A DNA stretch of 63,778 nucleotides, filler included, from Reticulomyxa filosa (taxonomy: Eukaryota > Protista > Foraminifera), in NCBI GenBank assembly GCA_000512085.1. It is 27 parts of 27 records of this genome, joined end to end, with 100 filler letters (N's around TTAATTAATTAA, not from the genome) between each part and the next. Parts side by side here need not be neighbours in the genome. Positions count along the whole stretch, not along the records: positions 52,781 to 54,941 come from ASPP01023189.1; 26 more parts are not named here. One strand, written 5' to 3'. The notes beneath the pieces are model-generated. The model made no database searches. It had not been told where the DNA came from and saw nothing but the letters and a program-made list of their open reading frames with translations. A program made the position numbers and the translations under genes. Below, piece by piece: positions 52,781 through 55,194 of the stretch (within the stretch, counting starts at the first letter, position 1; each line of letters starts with the position of its first letter).

Positions 52781-52962
52781 AAATGTAAAACTCTTTACAC
52801 TTGATCTTCTAACAAAAGAGACACCATGTTGACTGCAACTCGTCTATGACTACATGTTTAACTGTATTCTATTGTAGCAACTACTCTTTTTCTTATATAC
52901 TGCCACTATCTTGTCTCTGAAGACTGTGAGTAAAGGACTTTGAGAAAAAGAGTCTTACATTT
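52781..52962. mobile_element. 182-bp element with 16-bp terminal inverted repeats (MITE or solo-LTR-like)
   Basis: AAATGTAAAACTCTTT ... AAAGAGTCTTACATTT (15/16 complementary). The left flank is missing, so the TSD cannot be tested. Confidence 0.55.
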
Positions 52963-53285
52963 GACGTTTGGAAAGTACGCGTAGTTATCAGTTATCATCG
53001 TTGCAGTCTACAAATTGCAATGTGATCATAAAACTTTGTCAAAAAAAAAGAAATACCAAAAAGACAATACCAAAAAACTTTTTCACAAAAAAGTCTATCA
53101 ATAAAAGAACATCAGTTTTGAAAATGTTCTTTGAAATTTTTTTTTTGCCGAAAAATTTAATAGTCAAGAGAAAAATGATATTTTCTGCTTGACAAATCAT
53201 CAATAATATTCGTAAGTTCACATAAAAAAAAGTCTGTTATGGGGGGTCACATTCTACCAAAGTTTAAAAATATATAGTACTCCAG

Positions 53286-53403
53286 AGGTTCCGTAATATG
53301 CAGTTTTACCTTTGGGATGGCAGTGTGACTCTAGCATCAGCTGACAGACCCACCATTTGGGGGTAAGTGCGCGTAGCACCCGCACCGGAGCCTATTTTTT
53401 TTT
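53286..53403 (+). ncRNA. Candidate ~108-nt structured small RNA with a Pol III-like T9 terminator, family unassigned
   Basis: GC-rich island; terminal helix AGGUUCCG/CGGAGCCU; long G-U-rich helix 53306-53320/53353-53366; hairpin GUGC-GCGUA-GCAC; T9 directly after. Confidence 0.55.
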
Positions 53404-53848
53404 GCTGGAACATGAAATATATTTGAATTGTGATATCTAATTATTTATTGCGAAAAATGTCATGCAGAATTATATGCTTAAACATATTTGCTTGAGTCAA
53501 AAAATTTTAAAGAATTGACTTATATATTCGTTCTTATGTTAAATGAAAAAATGTAGTGTTTAAAAAGTTTGTCTACATGCGATTGAGAATATCACAGACG
53601 CCAAACAAATGACTAAAAAGACAAAGCAAAGCTTTTTAATTCTCAAGGAACAGAGTTAAATCCGACACCATTCAAACCAAAGAACAATTCTTTCGTTTTT
53701 GAATTGGGTATCATCACCACAATTGCATTGCACGCACAAAATCAAAACAAAAAAAGGTGGTTTAACATTCATGCAAACATTTTTTTTTCTTTTAATCGTG
53801 TGGTTCTTCTTGATTACATTTTGTTTGAACATTTGTGTAACATTTTTT

Positions 53849-53952
53849 TCCCATAACCGGCTGTTAAATGGCAGCGTATCAATCAAAATTTGTAATGTAT
53901 GTGTAATTCCTTTGATTGATTCAACTGTCGATTCGTCTAACAGCCGGCGGGA
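53849..53952 (-). promoter_or_regulatory. Long stem-loop immediately 3' of an in-frame UGA (candidate recoding element)
   Basis: Nested perfect 10-bp helices 53857-53866/53938-53947 and 53878-53887/53911-53920, with a UCCC/GGGA base. Confidence 0.55.
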
Positions 53953-54454
53953 CCTCAGGCCGAACGAGGGGCAGCCTGTGGCAGGTCACTGATAGTTCGA
54001 ACTCGCAAGGGCCTATTCCGGTTTCCTCCATCCCCCGGTCTCTTACCGGAGCTCCCTCCATTGGCTTGGCTCCGTTTGTCATTCACATACATAAATATGC
54101 TTCCAAGTAGCAATACTATAAAGGCTGTAAATCCATAGCGCCAATCCCAGTATGCTGATCACACGTTTTGTGTTTATGTTGCATCTTATATTTTACCGTA
54201 CTTCCATTTGTAAGTTGATCCAAAGATAAATAAATTAAAAAATAACAAGCACAAAAAATCACTGTCACTCAACTGAGACCACTACATAAGCAGACCAACA
54301 AGTAAAGCACTATTGCTTTCTTTGAACACAACGTGTCTTTGCTACACCATGAAGGCTTCTTACAGTTCGAAGAACAGCGAAAAGTTCTTTCAGTTCCCAA
54401 AGGATTGTAGCCTTTGGAATCTTGTTGAATCACTCCATTCAAAATGCGCGGCAT
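53937..54454 (-). CDS. Small membrane protein, candidate selenoprotein (SelK/FAM241-like layout), 132 aa if the UGA is decoded
   Basis: Exons 54454-54274 and 54154-53937 (GT-AG, phase 1): MPRILNGVIQQDS...AIVLYLLVCLCSGLTYWDWRYGFTAFIVLLLGSIFMYVNDKRSQANGGSSGKRPGDGGNRNRPLRVRTISDLPQAAPRSA-TGA-GPAGC-TAG. Confidence 0.7.
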
Positions 54455-55194
54455 TTTTTTTTGGCTCTGATGAACTTTTTTAAATTTTTTTTTGAAACAC
54501 TTTTTGGTTAGTTTTAAACCAACAATAATTTTTAACCGCATGTTTATTTAATGCGTACATTTTGCAATCCTTATTTTAATACGTGTCCAAAAAAAAAGAG
54601 TTGTTTTTTAAATAGACATTATTTGCATGATAATGATGCAACACAAAAGTAATACACAAATTTTAGAAATTCTCCAAGATACTCAATAAGACGAGCGACC
54701 GACGTTATGAGGAGATCTGCAACCAAATCAAACAAAGCAAAACGAAATAAAAAATATCAGCAGCAAATTTTCCACATGTTAAAAGTTAGTCGTGAAGCAC
54801 GTGGTTTGCTCTTGCATATTTTTTTAAAAAGGCAAAACAATTCGAACATTTTCAAGTGTCACAGATAAAAATTTTGCAATTTTCACCAGATAGTGAAAAT
54901 AGTAAGTGTTGTCAATTGCATTTCTTATGAACCAGAGTAGGNNNNNNNNNNNNNNNNNNNNNNNNNNNNNNNNNNNNNNNNNNNNTTAATTAATTAANNN
55001 NNNNNNNNNNNNNNNNNNNNNNNNNNNNNNNNNNNNNNNNNGATAAAATATAGTTTTTTAACAATAATTTGAAAAAACGCTTCTACGTTTGAATTTCTGT
55101 TCTGTAACAAAGATTACAAATTGAAAACTGTGTTGTGACGCTAAATCAAGGTTTTGAAAAAGGAGAACAAGATAGTAAACTTTTTCAATATAAC

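Follow-up and report, generated by a model that had tools for sequence, protein, structure and literature searches.

The minus strand of contig ASPP01023189.1 from the foraminiferan Reticulomyxa filosa (assembly GCA_000512085.1) carries a SelK-like gene with an in-frame UGA shortly before its end, together with a 104-nt hairpin that starts 2 nt 3' of this codon and a candidate SECIS element further downstream. Our best explanation, which we hold tentatively and would place somewhat short of an even chance, is that the gene has been mis-annotated, that the UGA most likely encodes selenocysteine (Sec), that the SECIS at 53726-53650 gives the specificity, and that the 104-nt hairpin is an accessory UGA-proximal stem. 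The folded structure of the hairpin, its exceptional stability, its position, its lack of a G.A quartet and the SECIS-like element are observed directly; we infer both the decoding of the UGA as Sec and any effect of the hairpin on that decoding. If the gene model is right, the locus would give Foraminifera, a group for which the searchable literature holds no report of selenoproteins or SECIS elements, a selenoprotein gene equipped with a SECIS, and the GenBank protein of the locus would be a mis-splice around the Sec codon.

The SelK-like gene and its deposited model

The window analysed is a stretch of 63,778 nucleotides, in which the entire contig (2161 bp) occupies positions 52781-54941; all of the relevant features of the contig lie on the minus strand. 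On translation, the SelK-like gene consists of two exons with about 102 codons and specifies a single-pass membrane protein. The coding part of exon 1 (54364-54454, minus strand), defined from the sequence and the list of open reading frames, starts with an ATG at 54454 and comprises 30 codons plus one base before a GTAAGA donor at 54363, with a second in-frame ATG upstream at 54541 as an alternative possible start. The proposed intron 1 (54155-54363, minus strand) is a GT...AG intron of 209 nt with 34% G+C that is inferred from splice signals and frame only, and its CAG acceptor at 54155 joins exon 1 to exon 2 in frame. The coding part of exon 2 up to the UGA (53958-54154, minus strand) specifies, after a WDW motif, a single hydrophobic transmembrane segment and a tail rich in Gly, Pro and Arg, and runs into an in-frame TGA at 53955-53957, the putative Sec codon, six codons before the end. 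The codons for G, P, A, G and C and the stop TAG (53939-53937) complete the frame at 53937-53954, giving a predicted C-terminal end of ...PRSA-UGA-GPAGC-UAG.

When exon 2 alone was used as the query, the sole Pfam match was SelK_SelG (PF10961), which is sub-threshold (E 0.0045, 18 bits against a cut-off of 23.3 bits) and aligns residues 5-47 with profile positions 25-70 of 86. The two-exon translation fits the architecture of the SelK family, which comprises about 100 residues, a single transmembrane helix, a tail rich in Gly and Pro, and Sec a few residues before the C-terminus. The UGA also falls at the position where SelK proteins have Sec followed by Gly. The G+C-rich coding block (55-67% G+C) extends across the TGA to about 53940, close to the TAG, after which G+C content falls to 30%; the G+C richness directly after the UGA could, however, stem from the hairpin instead of from coding. 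An AATAAA at 53444-53449 on the same strand is a possible poly(A) signal judged from sequence, and may set a 3' UTR of roughly 500 nt with both the UGA-proximal hairpin and the SECIS candidate inside it.

A word-index protein search with exon 2 gave no match, and phmmer against 1.84 billion representatives returned only the deposited model of the locus itself and a spurious repeat protein. Likewise, no relative was detected when metagenomes were scanned with exon 2, and a metagenome scan for the outer arms of the hairpin produced only eight unrelated G+C-rich chance palindromes. A feature search of the ESM Atlas was uninformative, returning ABC-membrane-like clusters, and ARAGORN detected no tRNA on the contig.

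The product deposited for this locus is ETO10732.1 (hypothetical protein RFI_26645, X6MB83_RETFI), a protein of 205 aa placed at 53656-54541 on the minus strand. In this model intron 1 is kept as coding sequence, and a splice that joins 54046 to 53937 skips the TGA and leads into an A+T-rich open frame. Were it correct, the intron at 54046-53937 would remove the UGA and the hairpin would lie within the final coding exon, which we regard as very improbable. The existence of the entry speaks for it, as do the signals of the intron, with GTAAGA as donor (54046) and AG at its end (53938-53937), and a frame that stays open to 53659. However, this intron would be the most G+C-rich stretch of the contig (62%, versus 34% for intron 1), the 93-residue tail that results has no Pfam match, the SelK_SelG match is lost, and the frame that is open across the 3' UTR (109 codons) is at chance level, the median longest stop-free run in shuffles being 99 codons. 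Furthermore, splicing around Sec-UGA codons is a routine error of gene predictors. Given the G+C content of the intron, the tail that belongs to no family and the chance-level open frame, we take ETO10732.1 to be the usual kind of erroneous prediction at a Sec codon; misannotation of selenoprotein genes has been noted before (PMC3753652).

Several further features of the contig can be recorded here. Spanning the start codon and exon 1, the minus-strand segment 54382-54491 (-24.8 kcal/mol, z about -4) ranks second among the structural outliers of the contig and contains a UUCCAAAGG/CCUUUGGGA stem of 9 bp. On the same strand, 53309-53413 forms a G+C-rich island in A+T-rich sequence, with an ATG-initiated frame of 35 codons that ends at a GTAAAA donor-like site. 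No Pfam, tRNA or Rfam match was found for this island, which may represent the opening exon of another gene further downstream and would then bound the 3' UTR of the SelK-like gene. At the contig end, 52781-53012 holds a cluster of inverted repeats of 16, 13 and 11 nt with 94%, 92% and 100% complementarity, respectively.

The hairpin next to the UGA

Folding of the minus strand from 53960 to 53849 with RNAfold gave a single stem-loop of 35 bp with a free energy of -36.5 kcal/mol. The hairpin itself, which occupies 53849-53952 (minus strand, 104 nt), was found by RNAfold, by the inverted-repeat search, by a sliding scan and in a 421-nt context fold. None of 200 dinucleotide shuffles was equally stable (z-score -4.66), and in a 110-nt sliding scan of both contig strands the hairpin was the top outlier, with a z of -6.7 against about -4.0 for the next independent window. 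In addition, the structure is retained in both the minimum free energy (MFE) and the centroid fold of the 421-nt context, and the repeat search identified two perfect 10-nt inverted repeats within it, 53857-53866 with 53938-53947 and 53878-53887 with 53911-53920. A sequence-only reading of this DNA had described UCCC/GGGA and two further pairs of arms stacking into a stem-loop of about 100 nt that starts 2 nt after the UGA and encloses the real stop, and the repeat search and RNAfold recover just such a structure, starting 2 nt 3' of the TGA (53957-53955) and holding the TAG (53939-53937) in its 5' arm.

From its base upward, as folded by RNAfold on the minus strand, the hairpin is composed of a 4-bp UCCC/GGGA foot (53952-53949/53852-53849), a 3-nt bulge, a G+C-rich main stem of 13 bp that contains the TAG (53948-53936/53868-53856), an internal loop, a middle portion of 5 bp (53927-53924/53875-53872 plus G53922-C53876), an A.A mismatch, an A/U-rich upper stem of 11 bp (53920-53910/53888-53878) and an apical loop of 21 nt (53909-53889). 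Evaluated in full, this structure has an energy of -36.3 kcal/mol; without the foot the energy is -31.0 kcal/mol, and once the main stem has melted it is -12.4 kcal/mol. The main stem begins 6 nt 3' of the UGA, the intervening nucleotides being GGUCCC. Immediately upstream, folding gave a small hairpin at 53956-53978 on the minus strand (7 bp, 9-nt loop, -9.6 kcal/mol), whose 3' arm takes in the U and G of the UGA as its last two bases. Since this small hairpin ends at the UGA and the 104-nt hairpin starts 2 nt after it, the UGA sits in a short gap between two stems. We considered whether the larger hairpin might be a MITE and dropped this idea, as it has no target-site duplication.

On its 5' side the hairpin has UUGA (53924-53921), 12 nt and then AA (53908-53907), which is unpaired in the MFE structure and so resembles the unpaired AA that lies about 10-13 nt from the core of a eukaryotic SECIS. 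The sequence-only reading had pointed out this motif and had remarked that the tandem G.A quartet was lacking, and it was right on both counts. By MFE and by manual pairing, the 3' strand opposite the UUGA reads A-C-G and contains no GA, so that the tandem G.A/A.G quartet is absent; shifting the register destroys helix 2, and none of the shifted registers gives both the tandem G.A/A.G and helix 2. In the consensus of the SECIS core, UGAN forms the 5' strand and KGAW the 3' strand (PMC3753652). As there is no quartet, there is no kink-turn for an SBP2-type protein either. The position of the hairpin is also too close to the UGA, given that a eukaryotic SECIS needs at least 51-111 nt from the UGA as determined experimentally (PMC3753652, PMC8659212), whereas the hairpin starts 2 nt after the codon and its UUGA lies about 32 nt after it. 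Because it has no G.A/A.G quartet, the 104-nt hairpin is not a SECIS.

The downstream SECIS candidate

In the likely 3' UTR, on the same strand as the gene and 241 nt 3' of the UGA, a hairpin at 53650-53726 is probably a SECIS of form 2, as judged by unconstrained MFE folding, a descriptor scan, shuffles and the 421-nt fold. Its cores, a 5' G-UGA-U at 53717-53713 and a 3' G-GA-U at 53663-53660, fit UGAN/KGAW (with a GUGA core), and in the unconstrained MFE of 53730-53650 the UGA (53716-53714) faces GAU (53662-53660) as a non-Watson-Crick internal loop. Above this core loop lies a helix 2 of 13 bp (7 bp, a CA bulge and 6 bp), approximately one turn, followed by an unpaired AA bulge (53698-53697) that belongs to a stretch of five A, a helix 3 of 2+6 bp, and a small UUG loop at 53687-53685. 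The candidate thus shares with form-2 SECIS elements the UGAN/KGAW core, the helix 2 of about 13 bp, the unpaired AA, the extra helix 3 and a location in the 3' UTR more than 111 nt from the UGA. It is unlike a typical form-2 SECIS in having G before the UGA, 15 nt before the unpaired AA in the MFE register (one to two nt longer than the 11-14 nt of the classical pattern), no Rfam match, and a weak helix 1 made up of two 3-bp segments of A-U and G.U pairs with a duplex energy of about -1 kcal/mol. Of these departures, G in place of A before the SECIS UGA is a known variant (PMC8659212).

Crude scans gave weak candidates, after which a cleaner scan picked out 53717-53661. With a descriptor built from the UGAN/KGAW consensus, whose AA window was widened after the candidate had been seen, 53726-53650 is the sole strong match on either strand of the contig. 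The inner hairpin has an energy of -17.0 kcal/mol, compared with dinucleotide shuffles of the 3' UTR of which 0 of 400 reach -15 and 4 of 400 reach -10 kcal/mol, while the folding z-score of the candidate hairpin alone is -1.67; the candidate is retained in the 421-nt fold. Searches of the 2161-nt contig and of a 536-nt 3' UTR against the Rfam SECIS families gave no match at E<=10, only chance-level matches being seen down to about 12 bits. Even with a broad model, scores fall below 10-15 bits for approximately 9-15% of genuine SECIS elements, and those of lineage-specific forms are lower (PMC3753652). The sequence-only reading had found no convincing SECIS downstream of the UGA, a statement that did not survive the finding at 53726-53650 of a UGAN/KGAW core that is unique on the contig and matched by none of 400 shuffles. 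One half of what it had named as telling against its own proposal was a canonical SECIS downstream, and on that half a SECIS-like form-2 hairpin has now been found.

Other pairings of core motifs were tried as SECIS elements and rejected. For the AUGA at 53772 the strand facing it is paired throughout; a core made of UUGA at 53675 and GA at 53592 requires seven G.U pairs and a branched top of 54 nt; and AUGA at 53714 combined with GA at 53672 has a bulge of 6 nt and reaches only -0.3 kcal/mol. At the contig end, one of the inverted-repeat pairs in 52781-53012 is flanked by ATGA...GA motifs (53012-52827), where the interior of 160 nt is too long for a SECIS. Separately, the 5' core of the candidate (53711-53717, minus strand) reads GUGAUGA, which is the C-box consensus of C/D snoRNAs (RUGAUGA); a D box (CUGA) to partner it is missing, and no snoRNA family was matched at this position.

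Competing readings and known systems

A role of the 104-nt hairpin in decoding the UGA is plausible on this analysis, because it is a real, non-random structure that is placed like SRE-type or readthrough-stimulating stems, with a 13-bp stem 6 nt after the UGA. A spacing of 5-9 nt is that of frameshift and readthrough stimulators, and the spacing of the SelN SRE is also 5-9 nt. In the mechanism that we propose, the element at 53726-53650, as a 3'-UTR SECIS of conventional type (form 2, GUGA core), would confer Sec specificity and recruit the Sec-delivery complex, and any action of the proximal hairpin would be on the ribosome. When the UGA occupies the A site, the next 6 nt (GGUCCC) would fill the mRNA channel, and the intact 13-bp stem (-31 kcal/mol including everything above it) would stand at the channel entrance, where it may cause the ribosome to pause and so favour slow Sec-tRNA delivery over release-factor binding. 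The ribosome would also have to unwind this stem before it could reach the true UAG.

Alternatively, the hairpin could be neutral or unrelated to decoding, either the relic of a small inverted duplication or an element for 3'-UTR stability or localisation, with Sec insertion depending on the downstream SECIS only. The two perfect 10-nt arms and the residual complementarity between them fit an inverted duplication, and the proximal stem-loop of SelS, which can be replaced by other stems or by unstructured sequence, has no active role, in that its deletion raised recoding via a spacing effect and it serves as a passive spacer for the SPUR element (PMC6844570). Because that stem-loop was found to be passive, a neutral hairpin keeps substantial weight as a possibility, although we do not think it probable given that the R. 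filosa hairpin is the most extreme structure on the contig, that it has the classical 6-nt spacing from the recoded codon, and that its 3' arm has to track a 5' arm that is coding. It is unlikely, on balance, that the UGA is a plain stop, whether the protein is SelK-like but lacks Sec or is a small, unrelated membrane protein, in which case the hairpin would be ordinary 3'-UTR structure and the SECIS-like hairpin a coincidence. Such a view draws on the sub-threshold SelK_SelG match, the lack of a match among the Rfam SECIS families, an extension of five codons before the next stop, which chance would produce, and the Sec machinery of R. filosa, which is undocumented in the searchable literature. 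However, this view would have to set aside a SECIS-like element that lies at a normal distance on the correct strand, has no second on the contig and is equalled in 0 of 400 shuffles, together with a UGA followed by Gly at the Sec position of SelK, and a G+C-rich composition that continues to the UAG. Another rhizarian, Bigelowiella natans, has 23 selenoprotein genes (PMC7539508).

Stronger roles for the hairpin appear less probable still. That the UGA is decoded as a C-terminal Sec by means of a lineage-specific, very large redefinition hairpin around the true stop, which would hold the ribosome and hide the UAG, and which at the extreme would work without a conventional SECIS, we consider improbable. 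We give even less credence to the proposal of the sequence-only reading that the hairpin is itself a non-canonical UGA-proximal Sec-insertion or readthrough signal in place of a 3'-UTR SECIS. It has on its side the UUGA, 12 nt and AA, the 11-bp upper stem with a loop that starts GGAA, the extreme stability, and the fact that the downstream SECIS is only a candidate; against it are the lack of a G.A/A.G quartet in any register built, and with it of an SBP2-type kink-turn, a would-be core some 32 nt from the UGA and hence under the minimum of 51-111 nt (PMC3753652), and the better SECIS candidate downstream. What stands of that proposal is a real, non-random structure with an SRE-like placement; what does not is its use as a substitute for a missing SECIS, there being a candidate downstream. 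Because a fairly ordinary-looking SECIS-like signal follows 241 nt further on, it is more likely that the hairpin is accessory or neutral than that it represents a novel type of recoding signal. If the gene model is right, the hairpin would extend the UGA-proximal stems of C-terminal-Sec mRNAs, so far described in mammals, to a distant protist, and with its unusual size it would lend itself as a natural test of whether such stems are active in decoding or passive.

Among known systems, the bacterial SECIS also forms a hairpin directly after the UGA that overlaps coding sequence, but it is bound by SelB and is roughly 40 nt in size, whereas here the gene is a spliced eukaryotic one and the hairpin is far larger. 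The closest known elements are the SelN SRE and the proximal stem-loops of SelS, SelK and SelO. As in those elements, the R. filosa hairpin is a stable stem-loop a few nucleotides 3' of a putative Sec-UGA and is distinct from the SECIS. The SelN SRE stimulates recoding, and also the readthrough of other stop codons, as summarized in PMC6844570 from Howard 2005 and 2007. It resembles the hairpin in being a stem-loop directly 3' of the Sec-UGA (here with the main stem 6 nt after it) and separate from the 3'-UTR SECIS. Unlike the hairpin, however, the SRE is wholly coding, far from the stop and phylogenetically conserved, and the hairpin, at 104 nt and 35 bp, exceeds it considerably in length, holds the genuine stop within it and extends into the 3' UTR. 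In mammalian C-terminal-Sec mRNAs, a proximal stem-loop has been described in SelS and predicted in six of the seven others, including SelK and SelO (PMC6844570). These stem-loops share with the hairpin a place at the start of the 3' UTR and a Sec near the C-terminus, and the SelK family is among them (PMC6844570). That of mammalian SelK has an 8-bp stem and a 6-nt loop, and that of SelS a 14-bp stem and a 6-nt loop at nt 3-36 of the 3' UTR (PMC6844570), compared with which the R. filosa hairpin has three times the size and starts ahead of the stop. The analysis as a whole does not support a SECIS-less non-canonical insertion signal, and partly supports the view that the hairpin is a known kind of UGA-proximal stem, unusually large and in a new lineage.
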